DNA of 64,000 bases from Trichoplax adhaerens (GCF_000150275.1 NW_002060950.1:2654106-2718105), one strand, 5' to 3'. Positions 4,283-29,804 are shown, numbered from the stretch's first letter. Notes: generated by a model from the letters alone, not told the origin. Numbers and translations: made by a program.

Positions 4283-5425
4283 ATGGATTCTATCAATTCA
4301 ACGCAATCTTCATTGCCATATTATTCATCAACCAACTATCTGGCTATTGTTATTTTAATTTTGTTAGCCATTGCCTGCATATTAGGCAATTTATTATCTA
4401 TTATAGTTATCTATCGCAATAAGAATATGCATGATCCGTCTGGCTTACTGATGGCCAACTTAGCCACTGCTGATTTATGCATCGGATTAATATTTATGAC
4501 TACGACCGTTGTATACACATGGAAAAAGTCTTATATGTTTAACGAGTTAAGTTGTGCAATGCGTGCATATCTTATTACTGTTATAGTCACTGTCTCGCAA
4601 TTTACTGCCGCTTATATTGCCATAGATCGCTGTATCTATGTCTGTAAGCCATTGCATTATCCAATGTGGATTACAAAATGGAAAATGGGATCCCTTATTA
4701 TATTTACATGGATATTAGCAAGTTTATTTGGTTCTATTCCGTTAATGCAGTTGGAACAATATGGCCTCGGTCGTTATACCTATGTCAGTTATATGTATTC
4801 ATGCTGGCTAGATATAAAAAAATTTCAACAAAATGGCAGCATCTTATTATTGCTATTTAATACTTTTATTGGACTCTTGCTTATCGTTTCAATATGTTAC
4901 ATTATTATCCTGTATAAAGCTAAAAAAGTACATACCACTATTCAGCCATTTAGAAGGCAATTCAATATACGGCAGCAACTACCGACACGAATGGTTAAGC
5001 TATCATGGATTAATAAGCCTACTAAAACGTCGGTTATACTCGTTGGTGTTTATTTGATTTGTGCAGCGCCAACAGCTATATTTGGTATAACTATGACATT
5101 AAATTTTGAATATTATAATGTTAGTGATGCTTACTATCGCGTTCTACTTTATTGGTGTATGTACGCTAACGCCTTAGCCAATCCATTTATCTTTGGATTT
5201 TCACATCGAGATTTCCGTCAGACATATCGATCGTTGTGTTGTAAAAATCCTATGCGATACATAATGCAATTTCTACCGGTTAAGAAGCAGCCACCCAGTG
5301 GAAGTTTATCGTTTACGATTGTGCGATCATCCGATAGTAACCATCATAGTATATCGCATTATCCAGCAAGCCGCTCAATGAGAGTGAACGCTGCTGGGGG
5401 GAAAAATTTATTTCTTGACTTTTAA
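4283..5425 (+). CDS. Intronless class A (rhodopsin-like) GPCR, orphan, amine/opsin-like branch
   Basis: 380-aa ORF with 7 hydrophobic segments; GN in TM1, NLAxAD in TM2, IAIDRC (DRY variant) then KPLHY, W in TM4, CAAP in TM6, NPFIF in TM7; aataaa at 5442. Confidence 0.95.
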   Translation: MDSINSTQSSLPYYSSTNYLAIVILILLAIACILGNLLSIIVIYRNKNMHDPSGLLMANLATADLCIGLIFMTTTVVYTWKKSYMFNELSCAMRAYLITVIVTVSQFTAAYIAIDRCIYVCKPLHYPMWITKWKMGSLIIFTWILASLFGSIPLMQLEQYGLGRYTYVSYMYSCWLDIKKFQQNGSILLLLFNTFIGLLLIVSICYIIILYKAKKVHTTIQPFRRQFNIRQQLPTRMVKLSWINKPTKTSVILVGVYLICAAPTAIFGITMTLNFEYYNVSDAYYRVLLYWCMYANALANPFIFGFSHRDFRQTYRSLCCKNPMRYIMQFLPVKKQPPSGSLSFTIVRSSDSNHHSISHYPASRSMRVNAAGGKNLFLDF

Positions 5426-12978: not shown

Positions 12979-14075
12979 ATGATTATTGGAAATACTGACA
13001 TAACCTTATCCGTCGCTATCATGGAGCTCCCATATGTAATTGCAATAATATCAGTATCCGGAACTATTTGGCAATCATATCCTGACGGAATCACATTCTC
13101 CAGCTACAGTTTTTATAGATTGTCAGTATTATCGATGCATCTCTNNNNNNNNNNNNNNNNNNNNNNNNNNNNNNNNNNNNNNNNNNNNNNNNNNNNNNNN
13201 NNNNNNNNNNNNNNNNNNNNNNNNNNNNNNNNNNNNNNNNNNNNNNNNNTTATCGCTTTTGATAGAGCTGCAGTTTTAATTTTAATTTTAAATCCAGTCA
13301 ATCTCTCAATACAACATATACTATTATTCTGTTTACCTTCTTGTATGCTGTGCGGATTTATTTTACAGTATCCTTATGATTTCACTATCTCCTTGATTAA
13401 TGTCATTATAATTTACATCCCATGTTAAGATGGCTATATTTTTTAAACCTCTTGGTTGTGAATTCAATTCGTGAATGTTATATTAAATTGCTATAGCACT
13501 ATTTTATATTGATTATTTGGCACTGAAATGGATGGCGCTATACAGTCTTGTTTACGGTCTGTATGTCGCATTTCGCTTAATTCTAGCAAGTGCTCGTCGA
13601 GATTGCTTTTCTTCTACTTAATAAATTGATTTGGTTATTTCGGAGGTTTTGCCTGTATTGAGGGCAACATTGACATACTGCATTTCACATATAAAATCTT
13701 CTTTATGATTGATCTCATGCCATTGATCACCGAGGCATCGTGATAAACTGACCATCTAAATTCTACAGTAGTGTATTTGTGAAGATATTTCGCCCTGGAT
13801 ACGAAGCTATTTTTCGCATCTTCCGTACTCTCTCTATCGTTAGGTAACAGACTGAAGGCGTAAATATCGGCGCCTGAAGATGTTATATCTCATAGAATCT
13901 TCTTTGAATGATGACAGAGACTCCGATTTAATCAAGGCGTCTTGTTTGCTCAATTTTACTTTTTCCAATTTCAATCAGAAGATACGCTATTGAACACTGC
14001 ATTAAAATCCTACATTGAGTAGCATTGAATCATCCATGGTTATATTATTATTTTTCGTCCAACTTTGTCCATTTT
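12979..14075 (+). pseudogene. Decayed class A GPCR spanning the assembly gap
   Basis: IIGNTDITLSV (TM2-like), SMHL..IAFDRA (TM3 DRY-like), and LNHPWLYYYFSSNF at ~14024-14066 (NPxxY/helix 8-like) at GPCR-like spacing; stops in between. Confidence 0.55.
13145..13249. other. Assembly gap (run of N)
   Basis: Run of n characters. Confidence 0.99.
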
Positions 14076-14624: not shown

Positions 14625-15061
14625 CTCTCCCTTTCTTTTCCGAACACTAATATCGCGGATTATAGTAAGAGAGAGAGAAGGAGACGTTGGAAAAGGGGTA
14701 ACAATTTTACTTGAGAGGTCCCAGCGTATCGCTAGGACCACTCAAGTCAAACTATTACCCTTTCTCCACCGTCTATTGCTCGCTATCGCTCTCCCTTTCT
14801 TTCCTAACACGAATATGGAGGATTATAGTAAGAGAGAGAGAAGGAGATGTTGGAAAAGGGGTAACAATTTTACTTGAGAGGTCCCAGCGTATCGTTAGAA
14901 CCACTCAAGTCAAACTATTACCCTTTCTCCACCGTCTATTGCTCGCTATCCCTCTCCCTTTCTTTTCCTAACACGAATATGGCGGATTATAGTAAGAGAG
15001 AGAGAGAAGGAGACGCTGGACAAGGGGCGACATTTTACTTGAGAGGTCCCAGCGTATCGTT
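14625..15061. repeat. Tandem repeat, ~163-164 bp unit, ~2.7 copies
   Basis: ggattatagtaagagagagagaaggaga...ttttacttgagaggtcccagcgtatcg recurs near 14657, 14820 and 14984; explains the overlapping near-identical ORFs. Confidence 0.95.
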
Positions 15062-15285: not shown

Positions 15286-16723
15286 AGGTGAGGGTACCGC
15301 ATTTGCGCGGCGATACTGCCTTAGGTTTCTGTTTTCTTAAGAGTGGGACGGTCTTCGCTCCATTTTTGCTGAGATCGGCTGTAATGAAAGGCTATTTACT
15401 TTATTTTGGAGACGGCACTGATGAATAGAGAGTAGCTACTGTCACTATTGACCGGATGGACTGCTCCTATGAGAGTACTGTACACCGTACTTAGGAGCAT
15501 AATCGGACTCCGCTGAAACCGTAAAGCATTTTCACCAGTTGTGAACCGTTTGGTAAGACTGTTCGACAGGTGTAATTGCTATGCAATCCAACTTGACCGC
15601 CATACACAACTGAATGGCAACATCAAAAAGTTGCAACCTGACTTGAAAATTAATATTCTCCATGTCAATGACTGTCGTGGCACCTTTGAAATGCAAAACG
15701 ACGGCGTAACTTATTGATGATTTTCTCTGCTACTGGCTGGACCGCCATTTTCAATTGGACGCCGTCAAATTGGCTGAAAGTGCTGTGACGTGTGGCAGCA
15801 GCTGAGGCGATACAACGTCATCCACCTGGACGCCAGAGCCCAATAACAACACCAACTTGATACTGTCAAGGCTCCACGTGGGTCCAGCTGGATGCAATGG
15901 CTGCTCTTGCTCTCTTTCTATTCCTTGATGATCATCAATCACAAGCTCGCTAAGCAACTGCATCACTATGGCAGTAGAAGTCGTTTTCTTTTTTGGCCCT
16001 CCACATACTGTAAGCTAACAACAGAGCCATCATGGTCCATTGAACAGTCTACTATTTCGCTTGCATGCAATATCGAGCTGCATGGTATCTTGTTATGGCT
16101 GCATCGTAGAATGAGCGAAGAGTAGTCAATCAAGGCCAAAATAGTCTAATTTTAATTTACCTCCATGTCCAATTAAGCATGCAATTAAAGCAAATAGCCA
16201 AGGCCATAGGGTAATTGATATCTTGGACGGATAAAATGTTTCATTAAAGGGTGTTATGGCTAACGGAACGCCAAAGCGTCTTAATAGAGTGATCTGGCTA
16301 TGAGTCAAGTTTTGATTAGGATGTTGTTTACAAAATGAAACACCCTGTGCATAATCAGGCTTGCGGTAGTTGAGCAGGGATCTCATCCGATGCATTTGCT
16401 TCCTTTTAATTTCTACTCACTTTGATTCTAAGCTTTTACTCAATTATACTTATACTGTATTGATGTGTGTGCGATGAGAGGTAAGCATCATTGTTTACGT
16501 TTTGCAAGCAAGTACTGATACTCTACTACAGTAGCTACAGTAGTTATCCACTGTCGATCCGAAGAGAGAGTGTTTTAGTTACTTTTTGAATAATGTCAGC
16601 CTTGGTGTCTATTAGTTGGTTACAACTTGATCGATATTCATATCTTGACAGTTATTGGTAGGAGATATATCACCTACGTACCCTACAACCGTATCTGATA
16701 TACAATATTATTTTGCTTACTAG

Positions 16724-19700
16724 GGTAAAACTTGTTACTACTTGAAGCATTTTGCTGCCACTCATCGCAGAGTTTCAGCTCGAGAGCTTTTTCTTCGTCA
16801 ACCTGATACTTGCTTGCGTGAAGTTATTCTAAAAGTTGTTCAAAATCTTAGGCAGGTAGGATGGAATGGAACTGGTATTGTTGAATCCATGCGATCCTCT
16901 CACTACGCGCATATTTAGAGTATTATTATAGCTATAAGATGGCTTGATTCGTTTTCACCTACTCTTGATAATATATTCTGTACATAGGCTGCTGTATAAG
17001 AGTATGTTTCAGTCAAGCCTGTAACTACTAGCTTACATTCCTGGTAGCTAAACTTTACCCCCGACCAATGTCGCTAAGTGCTGATGGAATCAATGTTGCA
17101 TTATTTGTATTGATCTTAACAGGGTTTCAATGTTGTTGTCGATGACGAGCATTGGTCTGTCAGTACTAGAAACTCCTACCTTAAAATCATAAAAGATAAA
17201 GTAAGTCAAGAGAAACTATTTGTAGCGACTAAATGATAGATAATACTGTAGAATTATTCGTTACATTATAGACCGCGTACTATCGATCAGTTAATCTAGC
17301 ATTTTGTCTCCAGGTCCCAAAGTGCACCTTTGCGTGTTATGTCTTTAATCCGCATCCAAATCATGGTAGATTGCAGTGTTGGTGGGCTCGAGAATGGGCT
17401 CTGGCAAAGTTTTCATTAGTTAAAATGCATCATAGCCCCAATCGTAATGCCGACTATAATTATCCTAGCCGGCCTATGGAAAGCGATAAGAAATTCGATC
17501 GGTGGTTTGATGATGAACTTGGTGGCAAAATGTATGGAAATAAATTATCCGAGCCAGGTTCGCATTGCGACAATAGATTGAATTAAATTGTACAAAGTAC
17601 AAAGTATTTCAAATTTTTAATTTTATTAATTTTGCGAAAATGCTATTACTCATAAATTTGCTCGTATTAATGTTGAACTGTTACTTTACTACGCGTACTA
17701 TAGAGAAACCAACATGGGAAGAATTTGAAAACCTACACCAACCCAAGCCTACACTGTTCTGTAATTCACCGTATCAATTAGAATTACCTGCCCTCTTTAT
17801 AGAATGGGAAGCTCTTTTAGTCGAGAAGGATGAAGATAACAAATTTTCCATTAAAACTAAAGATGGTATTGTAGATGCCATTCGTCTGTGGTCAAACGCT
17901 AATCCTACTGGTAGGATAATAGTCGTACGGGTTGGAAGACATCGTTGTGGTACGCCAACATACTAGCTAATTCTATCATTCTTCAGATATGCATCAAAGA
18001 CAGCAACGTATAGATTGGCTGTAATTTAACATGTACAACTTACTTATAACATGCTTTACAAATGTAGTCAAAATATGGTCTACTACATAATAATCACACT
18101 TAATCAATTATTCAACACTAGGTCAATCTGACTCAGAACAAAGCAGTCTAGAACTGGATGAGAGCACTGCTACTAAAATTACTAATGCTAAAATGTGCTC
18201 CTGTGTCAAAGATATGCGCTACATGATAGGAAAAATCTGCACGGAGGTACTGGAAGTTATCTTTCAATTTGTTTCTTCAACACGCGTGTGTCTCCTAATT
18301 TAGTAATTGTATTACGATACATTATTGTTGCTAGCTAACGGCGGTCCCAGTTTTTTTCACTTTTGTTAACGATCCGACGAAATCAGGCCTATTTACGTTA
18401 TTACCACGCCCTGGCATTATTGCATGGCTCCAATTTATACACAGGCTAAATCTCTTCCATCAATCCACCTTGTATGTTACGAGTTCACATTATCATACTC
18501 AATGTGCTGACAATGCTGGTATCAAAAGTATTCCCATAAAGAAGTTACTACGCAACCCACGTCAGGTGCATATTTTATATGTATTTATTATCATTACTGC
18601 GATAGTCTTTCAATATTTTATGAAAACTGCTCTGAAATGAAGCTAACTCTGGATACCACATTATAGATTATAAGTATTCGCAACAATGCCCATGTTTCGT
18701 GCTTGCCCGACATTGTACGAAATTTCGAATACACACGGTCTGATTACGTCGATTTAACTCAGAGTACTAATGAAGCAGAAGTTATTCTGTCAAAAGACCG
18801 CGATATAGTGCCTTTTTATAAATGTAATACCTCGGATTGTCACATTCTCCATAATGAATTGAGCTGTTGTCTAATATACCATATGGCTGATTATGGTCGC
18901 CTGCATGGTGCTTGCTATAAGACACAAGCCGTTTTCGATAGGTAAAAATGATAATTACAGTAGTTATTTCCCCTGCTTGTTGTTCATTATTTCTTTCTAA
19001 TATCTCACGCATACTTCCAAGTTATATTAACTTCTACGTGGAAAAGGCCTCGCGAAGTATTGTACGTAAAGTATCACGAAATTTTATAGAAAGCAAATTA
19101 TCACAAATATCTCAAGAAAGCTGTGACTTAGCGGATGAAAATCCCGTTTCAAACAGTAAGTTCATCCAATTATATTTGAAAATAGATGTAAAGCTCATTT
19201 ATTTGATTAGTGCAGACGGGAAACGATTGTCTAGTATGCTAAAAAGATTCATGTATCACTTACATAATAAAGAACAAACACCTAACAAAATTAAAGTGAC
19301 ATTGAAAGATATCCAAAAAATGGCAGCTAGCCCAGCTCATTTTTCACGCGGCATGCAATACAAAGATAATATAGAATCATTGACACCCATACGCAATGAC
19401 AGCAACGGCTTAATGACATTAAATTGTGTCTGTAAGTGAATTTACTTTAATAAGATGTACACATTAGTGAATTATACCGAAGTTGTTATTTATCAGACGG
19501 TGTCGACAATATTCTATTGGAGACTACATTATCAAACTTTCTGCTACCATCTTGTATAGGCAAAGGAACCCGAGATGTGCCATACAAGGCTTCAGCTGTT
19601 ATTGGCTGTTCCGGTAATAAGACAATCAGATAGTACTTCTAACTGCGTACTCAATCGCATTTATGCGTTTGCTTGTTTACAAGTTAGCCATGTTGTGTTT

Positions 19701-21676
19701 ATAGGTATACTCTCCGCTCAATGCTCCTGTCCTGTTGGTATGACAGGCACATGCAAGCATGTTACTGCTATGTTGTTAGTCCAGTTAGATCAACAGAGAT
19801 CAAATGAAGATGATACTACGGTATTGAATAATTATTGAATATCATGTCTGAGCATGATCAACGTAATGATAACATCGGGCATATTCTTAGGATGAAGAAA
19901 GCGGATCAGAAGAGCGGACGATGCGCAAACCATCACCTACACTAACACGTAAACAGTCAAATAAATTCCGGTCGCTACCATCGTGGCTGAATTCCACACA
20001 GGTTAATAATCACTTTCTAATAGCTGTAGATTTTTAATTTTTATCATAACGTTGACTCGATGAATCGGTCATGTTGTATGGATGGCTTATGCATACTACA
20101 CGTATCTTCCGTCAATGTTATAATAGAGCACAACGGATAACGAATCTGTTGAAACTAAAGGCGCACAACAAGAAACCTCTAAGGACATTAAAACACAACT
20201 CGATTTTAGTGATTCAAAGTTAGAAAATGCTACCCCAAATTTTTCAAATTCAGTCAGTGATGACGATTTGATAAATGACTCCGAAGCAACACAACCCTAT
20301 GATATGAATAACCAACAAACAAATGGTGTGCAATTAACTCGCCATCTAACGCCTGATCTCGCACAAGTAAAAACAAGTTCGATGGGATTTAAGAGAAAGA
20401 AAATGTATGTAGTATTCGTCATCACTGAATATTCAGGGTTAACTAAGCAGTAATTAGCATTTCCCTTCCTTACTTTGATATTTATTTTGAATGCGAATTT
20501 GTGAATAGCATACTCATTTTAATAATTTTTTAACCTTAATTGTAACCCACTAGAAAAGCTAGAAGATTAATTGCAACGACCTTGATTCGCGATTATTATT
20601 TGTGACGCCATATATTTTAATTTTAAACTAACATTTTCTTGTACCAGAACTAAGCAAGAAGCAGTAAAAAGAATTATATACCATATGTCGGTGCAAGAGC
20701 TGGTTGACACTGCTAGAGAAATTGTAAATGTTGAGGTATAGACAGTTGGACATTGCTAATCTAGCTAGATGTTTTAGAGCTTAGATATGTTACATGGTAT
20801 GTGTTAATGAGAGTACCAATACACAAACTTTTAGCGCATGAAAACAGGAGAGAATCTGAGCTCCGATAGCAATGCTCATACAAGTCAAAATTCCAATGAC
20901 AAAGACGATGAATCGGATTCCAATCGGTATTTAAATTTAGTTACACTTAATTTATTATACATATATGTACTCAAATTCGGTAAAGAAATATGATTTAGCA
21001 TGACTTTAATATTTCTTTGTGGTCAAAGTGAAACGAAAACTCAAAAAGCAAACATTACCTGTAATGATATTCTGGATGAACTATTTTCCGATAATCTCAA
21101 CGGCCAACCCAATACACTGTAAATAAATATTGCAAATATTGTGTAGTAATTATAATCAATCTAATAAGAAAGTAGATTGCACTATTGATATTTTTTATCA
21201 ACATATTCTTGAATAGGCCAACGCCGAGTGAATCTTTTAAAAGGAATCGTAATCGTAGCAGCCTCGGTGACAGTAGGATTCTGGTTCAAAAATCATTTCT
21301 ACAGAATCAGTCTGACTCGATTTTAGAAACTGTACCTGGAAGCTACATTCCAGAAACTTTTATTGATAGCATCCAACCAAATAAACGAAAGAGTATCTGG
21401 GTCGATCCATCCCCCGAAGCTACTTCAACGACAAAGTTACAAAAATGTCATGATGATAAGGACATTGTAAGCTACGTTCCGGAAACTCCAACGTCAAGCG
21501 AAGACGCTATTCCTAGTGTAAATAAATCTTATCAATCATCATTACGTAGTAGTGTTAGTCAAACGAATACTGGTAATCTCTGGGAAGCGAGTAATGAAGG
21601 CAACTCTTTGAAGGAAACAGATCGTGGCAAAGTTGAACCTGTAATTGATTTATCATTTTTGGATGAACTAATCTAA
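16724..21676 (+). CDS. Multi-exon ~1000-aa protein: PNK-like P-loop kinase domain + degenerate HAD-IIIA phosphatase + SWIM zinc finger + CYREN/MRI-like Ku-binding region (5' end unresolved, probably 16470-16680)
   Basis: In-phase GT-AG exons 16724-16855 (GKTCYY), 17123-17200 (GFNVVVDD..TRNSY), 17314-17557, 17704-17949 (EKPTWEEF..ALFIEWEALL; this donor least certain), 18122-18246, 18335-18565 (LPRPGII..LYVTS..ADNAGI), 18667-18941, 19022-19155, 19216-19431 (FSRGMQY), 19560-19613, 19705-19820 (CSCPVGMTGTCKH), 19891-20001 (RSLPSWL), 20127-20404, 20648-20735 (RIIYHMSVQELVDTAREIV), 20835-20926, 21029-21118, 21217-21676 (DLSFLDELI*). Confidence 0.8.
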
Positions 21677-22299
21677 GTCTGGTTGAATTATTAGCCAATC
21701 CCCTGTACAGGACTCCTGATTTGAGATTTCTATCTGTACTATTGGCGACTATTACTCAGTTTCTACAATAGCTATCAAATTGTCATTTAAATACATATAT
21801 ATGTATATATATACTCACGACTGCATGATTTTTCTATACGTTGCGTATTTGTTTTGTATTTATACTTGTTAACCCCTCCTCTATATTGTAGTATATCTGA
21901 GTTACAGTAGTTGGATTTTACTATGATTTTATAATGATATGTAATTTAAGCAGCAAATTAAATATTTCTAAATCTTAAAGTGCCGGTATATGCTTCCTGC
22001 AGTAGATCTGGTATTGAAATTATTTCTTAGCTAGTGATGAGATATGCATTCATTGAATGCCGTGAAAGCATTACTAACGACAACGCAAAAAGAATTACTG
22101 GTTCCTGAAATCGCCATTCATTACAAACTGATTAGTCATCATTTCAACAATGCATTTGTCTAGAAACTCCATAGTGTCATTTTATTAACATCAAAATGTA
22201 TTAGCAAATTAGCATTTCCATTTCTAATTTTATATATACAAGTATAATCGACTAGCAACAATTAGAGAGTAGTTCGAAAACAAGAGTCGATATTTTACA

Positions 22300-28871: not shown

Positions 28872-29804
28872 ATGGCTAGAAGAAGCGATCCATTAGCTCA
28901 CTCTTGGTCTGGTAATAGCATGGTCTTACCGCCGATACCAAATCAACATCATAGCGAAGCTCCAACTCCTTTACGCCATCATCGTAATCATGGGGTAGCC
29001 ACATCAAGTCATGATGCCAATCATAACGTAAAGTTAGTTCCAAATCATATAGGACGTCTGCTAAGTGAACAACATGGACGTAGCAGAACATTAAGTAGTC
29101 CGATGATGTTTGATCGCCAACGCGCCAATTCATTTACAGCAGCAGCCTCCAATTCAATTTTAGCTATAAGCGAGAGTGAAAAAGCTATGAAACAATCCAA
29201 TTCTATTGATACTATCGATCATAAGAAAATGTTGAAAAAACTACATCATCGTTCGGTAACTATGATCTCCATTAATGGTAGTTTAGGTCATGATAATGCA
29301 GGGGCAGTATCATTAACCGATAAAGCACTATTAAGCCCCAAGTTGTTACGTTCAGCACGTTATTCCACACCGGCAGCTGTATCCAATAATATTGAATCAG
29401 AATCAAGTAGAGGTGGTTCAGAAAATCCCAGTCGGCCTGTATCCATCGATGATTATAAAACTCTATTAGGAACAATGGATCAAGAAAGCAATAAATTGCA
29501 GTCACTAAATGATCCAGATACACGAAATCATCAATCACATCATGCTGATCAAGGCACAAACGACGAAAATGATAATTCAGCATTAATTGACGACGATCAT
29601 TCCAAGAAACAACAAGGCAATAGTGTGGACAAAAATCGACGTATTCGTCCAAGTCAAAATAATCCAACAGAAGTCGGCCAGCACCAAGCTGATCAAGACT
29701 ATCGAGCTGTTAATCGTGCAAAATGTGAAAGCTGGCTGGATGGCTTAAAGGATATTGATTATAGCATGCCTACAGCAGACGTGATTACCGATTATAACGA
29801 TTAA
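28872..29804 (+). CDS. Uncharacterised 310-aa hydrophilic, probably disordered protein; intronless CDS
   Basis: 933-nt ORF in AT-rich DNA with raised GC; upstream acceptor tttcacag at 28708 suggests a 5' UTR intron; S/H/N/D-rich; VLPPI near N-terminus and AKCESWLDGL near C-terminus. Confidence 0.85.
   Translation: MARRSDPLAHSWSGNSMVLPPIPNQHHSEAPTPLRHHRNHGVATSSHDANHNVKLVPNHIGRLLSEQHGRSRTLSSPMMFDRQRANSFTAAASNSILAISESEKAMKQSNSIDTIDHKKMLKKLHHRSVTMISINGSLGHDNAGAVSLTDKALLSPKLLRSARYSTPAAVSNNIESESSRGGSENPSRPVSIDDYKTLLGTMDQESNKLQSLNDPDTRNHQSHHADQGTNDENDNSALIDDDHSKKQQGNSVDKNRRIRPSQNNPTEVGQHQADQDYRAVNRAKCESWLDGLKDIDYSMPTADVITDYND

Follow-up and report, generated by a model that had tools for sequence, protein, structure and literature searches.

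We describe a gene of Trichoplax adhaerens on the plus strand of a 64,000-nucleotide stretch of DNA (GCF_000150275.1, NW_002060950.1:2654106-2718105; hereafter the window, with positions counted from its first letter). The gene runs from 15968 to 21676, consists of 18 exons joined in one transcript and one frame, and encodes a protein of 984 residues, in which a putative P-loop domain, a HAD-like part and a candidate SWIM finger are followed by an acidic tail with an A-type Ku-binding motif and a segment resembling the core of CYREN/MRI. We assign a probability of about one half to the reading that this protein is an accessory factor of non-homologous end joining (NHEJ) tethered to Ku, and a long form or relative of CYREN/MRI.

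The acidic tail carries a Ku-binding motif and an MRI-like core segment

The tail comprises 385 residues and is acidic and low in hydrophobic residues. Within the protein, RSLPSWL (residues 639-645) places R, P, W and L at 0, +3, +5 and +6, which is the exact spacing found in MRI, and basic residues precede it. According to preprints, the A-type Ku-binding motif of MRI places R11, P14, W16 and either L17 (human) or M17 (most species) on the von Willebrand domain of Ku80. Residues 49-81 of MRI have been described as a multimerisation domain with a strand (54-YCMN-57) and a helix containing V64, L66, I68 and L69 (preprint), and MRI uses T52, V53 and Y54 to pair with an ERCC6L2 strand, bridging ERCC6L2 to Ku (preprint).

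The core-like segment RIIYHMSVQELVDTAREIV (residues 750-768) begins 111 residues after the Ku motif. Its strand reads I-I-Y-H-M(-S) against T52-V53-Y54-C-M in MRI, with the Tyr, the Met and the hydrophobic character of the strand kept, and I and V occupy the positions of MRI I68 and L69 in the helix. The segment reached a BLOSUM62 score of 36 against the human MRI 19-mer, a reference that was taken from a preliminary description of this DNA and confirmed at 11 of its 19 positions by residue numbers in two papers. Calculated from exact score distributions, the core match has a chance of 7e-8 to 4e-7 per position, and the Ku motif one of ~1e-7. Each motif singly is expected 0.3-2 times in a proteome of 5e6 residues, and both motifs in the MRI order within 300 residues are expected 6e-6 to 9e-5 times per proteome. 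A coincidence of both motifs is unlikely, even given the size of the scan, although short motifs of this kind may have converged. The tail further carries paired motifs, namely two copies of SY[IV]PET and two of [IF]LDEL[FI].

RNA contigs join 18 exons into a single frame

Public sequencing runs X4, X5, X9 and X11 were compared over window positions 15800-21790 with contigs built at k=31. Run X4 spans the introns and behaves like DNA; X5, X9 and X11 each belong to a different study, the last of them being recorded as RNA. Spliced RNA contigs of X5, X9 and X11 contained 15 GT..AG joints, each checked against the window sequence, and a 16th junction (20404|20648) was read from the loose end of an X11 contig. 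Together they connect 17 exons from 16724 to 21676, which when joined amount to 2913 bases and 970 codons without an internal stop. The frame closes with the stop codon TAA at 21674-21676, after the C-terminal ...SFLDELI, and single contigs of X5 (4325 nt) and X9 (3189 nt) cover the whole gene through 21790. The gene is single-copy in the genome (exons 4 and 8 searched).

Because the frame at 16724 opens directly after a stop with GKT, an upstream exon is needed. Such an exon is present at 15968-16009, with an ATG at 15968, 14 codons (MAVEVVFFFGPPHT) and the donor ACT|GTAAGC, and its joining in phase 0 to 16724 rebuilds the intact Walker A loop GPPHTGKT. In X9 and X11, position 16724 is exactly where the spliced contigs start; an unspliced contig of X9 begins at 15981, and that of X11 runs up to 16753. 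These breaks correspond to graph branches at 16724 and 16010 (k=31) and thus point to a splice 16009|16724, which is absent from the listed joints and very likely.

The preliminary description, made from the sequence alone, had joined in-phase exons into one frame of ~1000 residues, and the RNA joints and the open frame bear this out at 984 residues. Both junctions singled out there as marks of a single transcript, 17949|18122 and 19820|19891, were found exactly in spliced contigs, and the features it listed (GKT at 16724, SWIM, RSLPSWL, RIIYHMSVQELVDTAREIV and the acidic-hydrophobic C-terminus) are all present in the domain order it gave. Its boundaries needed correction in two places: the extent 16724-21676 holds for the exons, but the open frame 18942-19436 contains a real intron at 19156-19272, and 16724 is an exon boundary, though the gene begins upstream at 15968. 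The exons are listed below.

Exon 1, 15968-16009, plus strand: start codon and first half of the Walker A loop, MAVEVVFFFGPPHT (ATG, frame and donor; junction taken from contig breaks)
Exon 2, 16724-16855, plus strand: Walker A GKT, start of the putative P-loop domain (acceptor at 16724; joint 16855|17123 in X5, X9 and X11)
Exon 3, 17123-17200, plus strand: Walker-B-like NVVVDDEH (RNA joints, translation)
Exon 4, 17314-17557, plus strand: remainder of the putative P-loop domain, rich in Cys, His and Trp (RNA joints)
Exon 5, 17704-17949, plus strand: first part of the HAD-like domain, with LFIEWEALL (17796-17816) at the place of motif I (DxDGT) (RNA joints; placed by eye)
Exon 6, 18122-18246, plus strand: middle of the HAD-like domain (RNA joints)
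Exon 7, 18335-18565, plus strand: C-terminal third of the HAD-like domain, with LPRPGIIAW, LYVTSSHYH (18470-18496) at motif IV, and CADNAGIKSI (Pfam HAD_2, ESM-Atlas)
Exon 8, 18667-18941, plus strand: Cys/His-rich region (RNA joints; homologue P0001)
Exon 9, 19022-19155, plus strand: joints 18941|19022 and 19155|19273
Exon 10, 19273-19431, plus strand: presumably the N-terminal strands of an extended SWIM domain (HFSRGMQY...) (RNA joints; assigned from the characteristic SWIM pattern)
Exon 11, 19560-19613, plus strand: RNA joints
Exon 12, 19705-19820, plus strand: candidate SWIM zinc finger CSCPVGMTGTCKH at 19722-19760 (sub-threshold Pfam SWIM match)
Exon 13, 19891-20001, plus strand: A-type Ku-binding motif in KFRSLPSWL, with RSLPSWL at 19969-19989 (joint 19820|19891 in X5, X9 and X11)
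Exon 14, 20127-20404, plus strand: predicted disordered acidic linker ending in KRKK (joint 20001|20127; 20404|20648 from the loose end of the X11 contig)
Exon 15, 20648-20735, plus strand: MRI/CYREN-core-like strand and helix RIIYHMSVQELVDTAREIV at 20670-20726 (BLOSUM62 score 36)
Exon 16, 20835-20926, plus strand: acidic linker rich in Ser and Asn (RNA joints)
Exon 17, 21029-21118, plus strand: first acidic-hydrophobic motif, ILDELF (RNA joints)
Exon 18, 21217-21676, plus strand: disordered tail with two SY[IV]PET repeats, C-terminal FLDELI and TAA stop (joint 21118|21217)

The first intron (16010-16723, 714 bases) is retained in a minority of the RNA, its depth relative to the spliced body being ~1/4 in X9 and ~1/3 in X11, and five variants clustered at 16573-16641 break the contigs there. 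A transcribed stretch at 15586-15980 (contig depth 26-29 in X9) abuts the gene start. On the minus strand, an open reading frame (ORF) of 71 codons at 15751-15966, without a Pfam match, starts 2 bases from the ATG at 15968 and has the appearance of a neighbouring gene in head-to-head orientation, with 5' ends that overlap.

The N-terminal half combines P-loop, HAD-like and SWIM-type sequence

Profile, structure and homology searches were run exon by exon (pieces of 14-91 residues), and the joined 984-residue protein was used for frame, composition, motif positions and chance statistics only. Genome-wide profile scans in six frames covered the assembly of 105,631,681 bases in 1,414 contigs. Since short exons divide the domains, with the P-loop domain spread over four of them, profile searches by exon are weak.

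A Walker A loop of the form GxxxxGK[ST], read as GPPHTGKT, is split between exons 1 and 2. The assignment of exons 1-4 to a P-loop NTPase is plausible, its kinase class being read from this loop, and a PNK-like kinase is plausible because a P-loop followed by a HAD domain is the order of phage T4 Pnk. Exon 4 was not recognised by ESM-Atlas, where it had low recognition and SPASM and DUF3463 as neighbours.

Exon 7 matched Pfam HAD_2 at the C-terminal end of the profile with 11.8 bits (E 0.26). All ten of its best named neighbours in ESM-Atlas were HAD or PNK3P (scores 0.92-0.90, recognition 3435), and the neighbours include phage PNK3P clusters. When the HAD motifs were placed by eye, motif I read LFIEWEALL against FDLDGTL of the PNKP encoded in the same genome, the acidic pair of motif IV was replaced (YVTSSHYH, followed by CADNAGIKSI, against DAAGR in the PNKP reference), and PRPGIIAW in exon 7 stood for RKPxxGMW. 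This part of the protein is probably a HAD domain whose catalytic residues have been replaced and which would hence be catalytically dead. AlphaFold models built from two-sequence alignments were of low confidence, with a predicted local distance difference test score (pLDDT) of 47 for exon 7 and 37 for exon 8.

The near-threshold candidate SWIM finger in exon 12, CSCPVGMTGTCKH, has the pattern CxCx7CxH. Exon 12 scored 15.5 bits (E 0.013) against Pfam SWIM (PF04434), for which the cut-off is 19.6 bits, and in the six-frame genome scan the locus reached 18.2 bits, just below that cut-off, as the fourth of six SWIM matches.

Some database matches were set aside. Those in the PDB to RxLR effector repeats and ErbB3 (four exons searched) were judged spurious, and exon-wise Pfam, NCBIfam and PHROG matches other than HAD_2 and SWIM were judged noise.

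The HAD-like exons are the best conserved in a related organism

BLASTP of exon 8 found one protein, P0001 (an exon ORF of 83 residues), with 76% identity. P0001 lies on four short metagenome contigs of a related organism that carry orthologous exons 5-12 in the same order, and the same contigs were found again with the neighbouring ORF of P0001 as the query. These contigs (L003-L006; ENA ERZ27263980, ERZ23499240 and ERZ27263986, and Logan SRR6854575) come from environmental metagenomes at low coverage; their exons show 60-94% protein identity, and their introns have diverged. Identity to the related organism was as follows.

Exon 5: 82%
Exon 6: 93%
Exon 7: 91%
Exon 8: 74% (tblastn, full exon)
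Exon 9: 60%
Exon 10: 73%
Exon 11: 88%
Exon 12, first 16 residues: 94%

The HAD-like exons 6-7 are thus the best conserved, at 91-93% against 60-74% in the next exons (8-10), and such high conservation of a dead HAD-like part is as expected of a pseudo-enzyme kept for binding. The finger CSCPVG[ML]TGTC is also kept in the related organism. Among variants in the RNA contigs, the tail holds 7 of the 11 non-synonymous ones, including five in exon 14; neither the Ku motif nor exon 15 contains any variant, and the only one in exon 13 is synonymous. Protein homologue searches with exon 18 and with the frame of the SWIM exon found none, in a length window that excluded full-length relatives, and a search for the exon-junction pattern in JGI metagenome contigs gave no match.

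Ku80, ERCC6L2 and a canonical PNKP are encoded in the same genome

The von Willebrand domain of Ku (Ku_N) was matched at two loci in the genome. One of them, L007, reads as Ku80, and at least five exons make up its von Willebrand domain. Compared by eye, L007 appears to retain D, I and D where the human Ku80 helix named in one of the MRI preprints has D109, I112 and D116. An ERCC6L2 orthologue was found at L009 (SNF2-rel_dom 180.7 bits, Helicase_C, VIGSSK 29.1 bits and RHH_ERCC6L2 53.6 bits), so both MRI partners known from mammals, Ku80 and ERCC6L2, are encoded in the genome. L009 (G000:C1408:1676000-1685999) holds the ERCC6L2 gene on its minus strand, with a stop at L009:5569-5571 right after RHH_ERCC6L2; the Trichoplax orthologue seems to be without the long C-terminal extension of the human protein. 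A complex prediction with the ERCC6L2 RHH exon and the core peptide scored 0.08 (mark 0.34) and weighs neither for nor against pairing.

A canonical PNKP is encoded at L001 (G000:C1403:1639500-1646500), with an FHA domain, an intact phosphatase motif FDLDGTL and a kinase containing VVIDNTN. The gene in the window is accordingly an additional, divergent locus.

Comparison with known proteins

A 2023 preprint surveying NHEJ factors across eukaryotes (bioRxiv 10.1101/2023.05.26.542399) terms CYREN/MRI the least conserved and mentions briefly, in a single sentence and a single table cell, that a PNKP-like protein of sea urchin is fused to a Ku-binding motif resembling that of CYREN. Under CYREN, Table S1 of the survey gives A0A7M7HMK7 (sea urchin) and K1RRV0 (oyster); it has no entry for Nematostella or Amphimedon and includes no placozoan. 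Our literature search found no other paper naming either accession. The sea-urchin protein, likened here by description only, embodies the same idea, a PNKP-like body with a CYREN-type Ku motif in an invertebrate. This precedent supports such an architecture and lowers the novelty of the bare observation. Whereas the preliminary description had held the architecture to be undescribed, the fusion of a PNKP-like protein to a Ku motif had thus been noted before, and what is new here lies in the further features: a gene proven by RNA in a basal animal, an MRI-like core besides the Ku motif, a candidate SWIM finger, a probably dead yet highly conserved HAD domain, and the co-occurrence with ERCC6L2.

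CYREN/MRI (C7orf49; Pfam PF15325) is resembled in the identical spacing of the Ku motif, a downstream core like residues 51-69, the disordered acidic context and the order of these elements. MRI, however, has 157 residues and no enzyme-like folded domain, whereas the Trichoplax motifs follow ~600 residues of folded domains. In human CYREN, the isoforms point to an exon boundary between residues 46 and 47. The gap between motif and core is 111 residues in Trichoplax against ~40 in MRI, and the Trichoplax protein has two of four helix contacts changed, no recognisable XLF-type C-terminal motif and no exon-wise match to Pfam MRI. With PNKP and T4 polynucleotide kinase/phosphatase it would share a P-loop adjoining a HAD domain, the P-loop coming first as in T4 Pnk, but it gave no FHA, AAA_33 or PNK3P match, and it reads IEWEA for DxDGT and TSSH at motif IV. 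APLF, too, is an accessory factor that binds Ku80, and it combines an A-type motif with a zinc-binding module and an acidic tail at its C-terminus; it differs in its FHA domain and PBZ fingers and has no P-loop, HAD, SWIM or MRI-like core. SWS1/ZSWIM7 and other SWIM proteins have a CxCxnCxH finger after strands with an RG..Y pattern as well, but are small proteins or parts of other architectures. We know of no SWIM-finger protein that combines a P-loop, a HAD domain and a Ku-binding motif.

Weighing the relationship to CYREN/MRI

Several observations weigh against the proposed assignment. Two of the four positions of the MRI multimerisation helix differ (V64 to T and L66 to R), and the human 19-mer used as reference is confirmed in part. 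Pfam MRI (PF15325, cut-off 27 bits) found no match in exons 13 and 15 or in the six-frame genome, in a test that is itself weak, as the profile matched in no control and short exons cannot pass the HMMER filters. The C-terminus (...VIDLSFLDELI) is acidic-hydrophobic and has no basic patch, and, compared without a reference motif, does not look like the XLF type. With ~600 residues of folded-type sequence before the tail, the protein is six times as long as MRI. For the N-terminal half, there was no AAA_33 (PF13671) match at the locus, which is not among the 22 AAA_33 matches of the six-frame genome scan, and exons 2-4 gave no real Pfam, NCBIfam, PHROG or PDB match in the weak exon-wise searches. 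PNK3P (PF08645) was likewise not matched at the locus, either by exon or in the six-frame genome scan, and PDB sequence searches of four exons gave no real match. Because tblastn of every exon against the PNKP locus of the same genome yielded nothing above noise, the placements of the HAD motifs are a reading without statistical support. The variants in the RNA contigs (5 synonymous, 11 non-synonymous) indicate weak overall constraint, and the contigs of the related organism end before the tail, the comparison covering exons 5-12 and not the Ku motif or the core.

Judged by all this, the earlier claim of a CYREN/MRI-like protein retains an exact A-type Ku motif and a core-like segment, but lacks an MRI profile match and keeps only half of the helix. 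The "PNK-like kinase" has its Walker A loop but no AAA_33 match by exon or in six frames. The "pseudo-phosphatase" gained weak HAD_2 and ESM-Atlas support and shows replaced catalytic positions, though not a PNK3P match, and the SWIM call stands on a CxCxnCxH pattern kept in the related organism, with a score just under the Pfam cut-off.

A real gene could still have acquired its CYREN-like motifs as chance matches in a fast-evolving, low-complexity tail, the P-loop/pseudo-HAD/SWIM protein then being unrelated to Ku and acting, for example, in RNA-end metabolism or as a recombination mediator. The missing MRI profile match fits this account, as does a tail that holds most of the non-synonymous variants and whose last exon has no detectable homologue; each motif alone occurs about once per proteome, and many windows were scanned, so rare coincidences arise. 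However, the ordered joint occurrence is expected only ~1e-5 to 1e-4 times per proteome, neither motif contains variants, both MRI partners are in the genome, and the sea-urchin PNKP-like protein has the same kind of motif. We consider chance matches unlikely, though not far-fetched. The two-gene alternative, in which an enzyme-like gene and a small CYREN-like gene are joined only by contigs running across both, draws on the fact that assembled contigs alone cannot prove a single transcript. Here, though, three runs of separate studies contain the GT..AG joint 19820|19891, which links the SWIM exon in frame with the exon of the Ku motif; no stop interrupts the frame across the joint, and downstream of it there is no start codon in a context that would suit a separate gene, which makes two genes very unlikely.

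A further account accepts recruitment to Ku in end joining and denies homology to CYREN: a PNKP-like paralogue would have gained its Ku motif independently, as in APLF and WRN, replacing FHA-mediated recruitment, and the core would be convergent or irrelevant. A-type Ku-binding motifs do occur in the unrelated proteins APLF, WRN and MRI, short linear motifs arise easily, and the core helix is only half conserved; the preprint, moreover, describes the sea-urchin case only as a fusion to a Ku-binding motif. Yet the core scores 36 over the 19 positions of the partly confirmed human reference (~3e-7 per position), it follows the Ku motif as it does in MRI, and its ERCC6L2-contacting strand is hydrophobic with the Tyr kept; we regard an independent gain as improbable.

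Surroundings of the gene

The window is AT-rich (29-42% G+C) and its introns are short and of the GT..AG type. Upstream of the gene, a G+C-richer stretch at 14625-15061 contains three tandem copies of a 163-base unit that are 93-100% alike, with repeated open frames on both strands. A run of N at ~13150-13255 marks an assembly gap and gives X in translations. Farther off, an intronless ORF of 380 codons at 4283-5425 encodes a rhodopsin-family seven-transmembrane receptor (7tm_1, 122 bits), and an ORF of 310 codons at 28872-29804, whose product contains many Ser, Asn, His and Asp residues, matched no Pfam family.

Proposed function and significance

As a Ku-tethered NHEJ accessory factor related to CYREN/MRI, the protein would dock through RSLPSWL on the von Willebrand domain of Ku80, as MRI and APLF do, and its core segment would behave as it does in mammals, either self-associating or pairing with an ERCC6L2 strand. 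The N-terminal module, presumed to consist of a P-loop NTPase, a PNK-type HAD domain lacking the catalytic Asp residues and a SWIM finger, would thereby be brought to Ku-bound DNA ends, which it may bind or sense without dephosphorylating them; the P-loop may have kept the ability to bind ATP or to hydrolyse it.

It is speculation that vertebrate CYREN arose from such a long form by truncation. In its full version, CYREN/MRI would descend from an ancient metazoan protein with a P-loop, a dead PNK-type HAD domain, a SWIM finger and a tail binding Ku and ERCC6L2, present in the placozoan-bilaterian ancestor; the vertebrate gene would represent the tail after its separation, and the Ku-MRI-ERCC6L2 axis would date back to the origin of animals. 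We put this history forward tentatively and hold it to be somewhat doubtful.

CYREN/MRI has disputed roles, being credited with both stimulating and inhibiting end joining, and no known origin outside vertebrates. If the proposed relationship is true, MRI would acquire an evolutionary history through this long form in a basal animal, which would also hint at what the adaptor first brought to DNA ends bound by Ku. The pseudo-enzymes of DNA repair would gain a conserved pseudo-phosphatase, and Trichoplax, with a single-copy gene, a small genome and both partners, would offer a simple system for the Ku-MRI-ERCC6L2 bridge.

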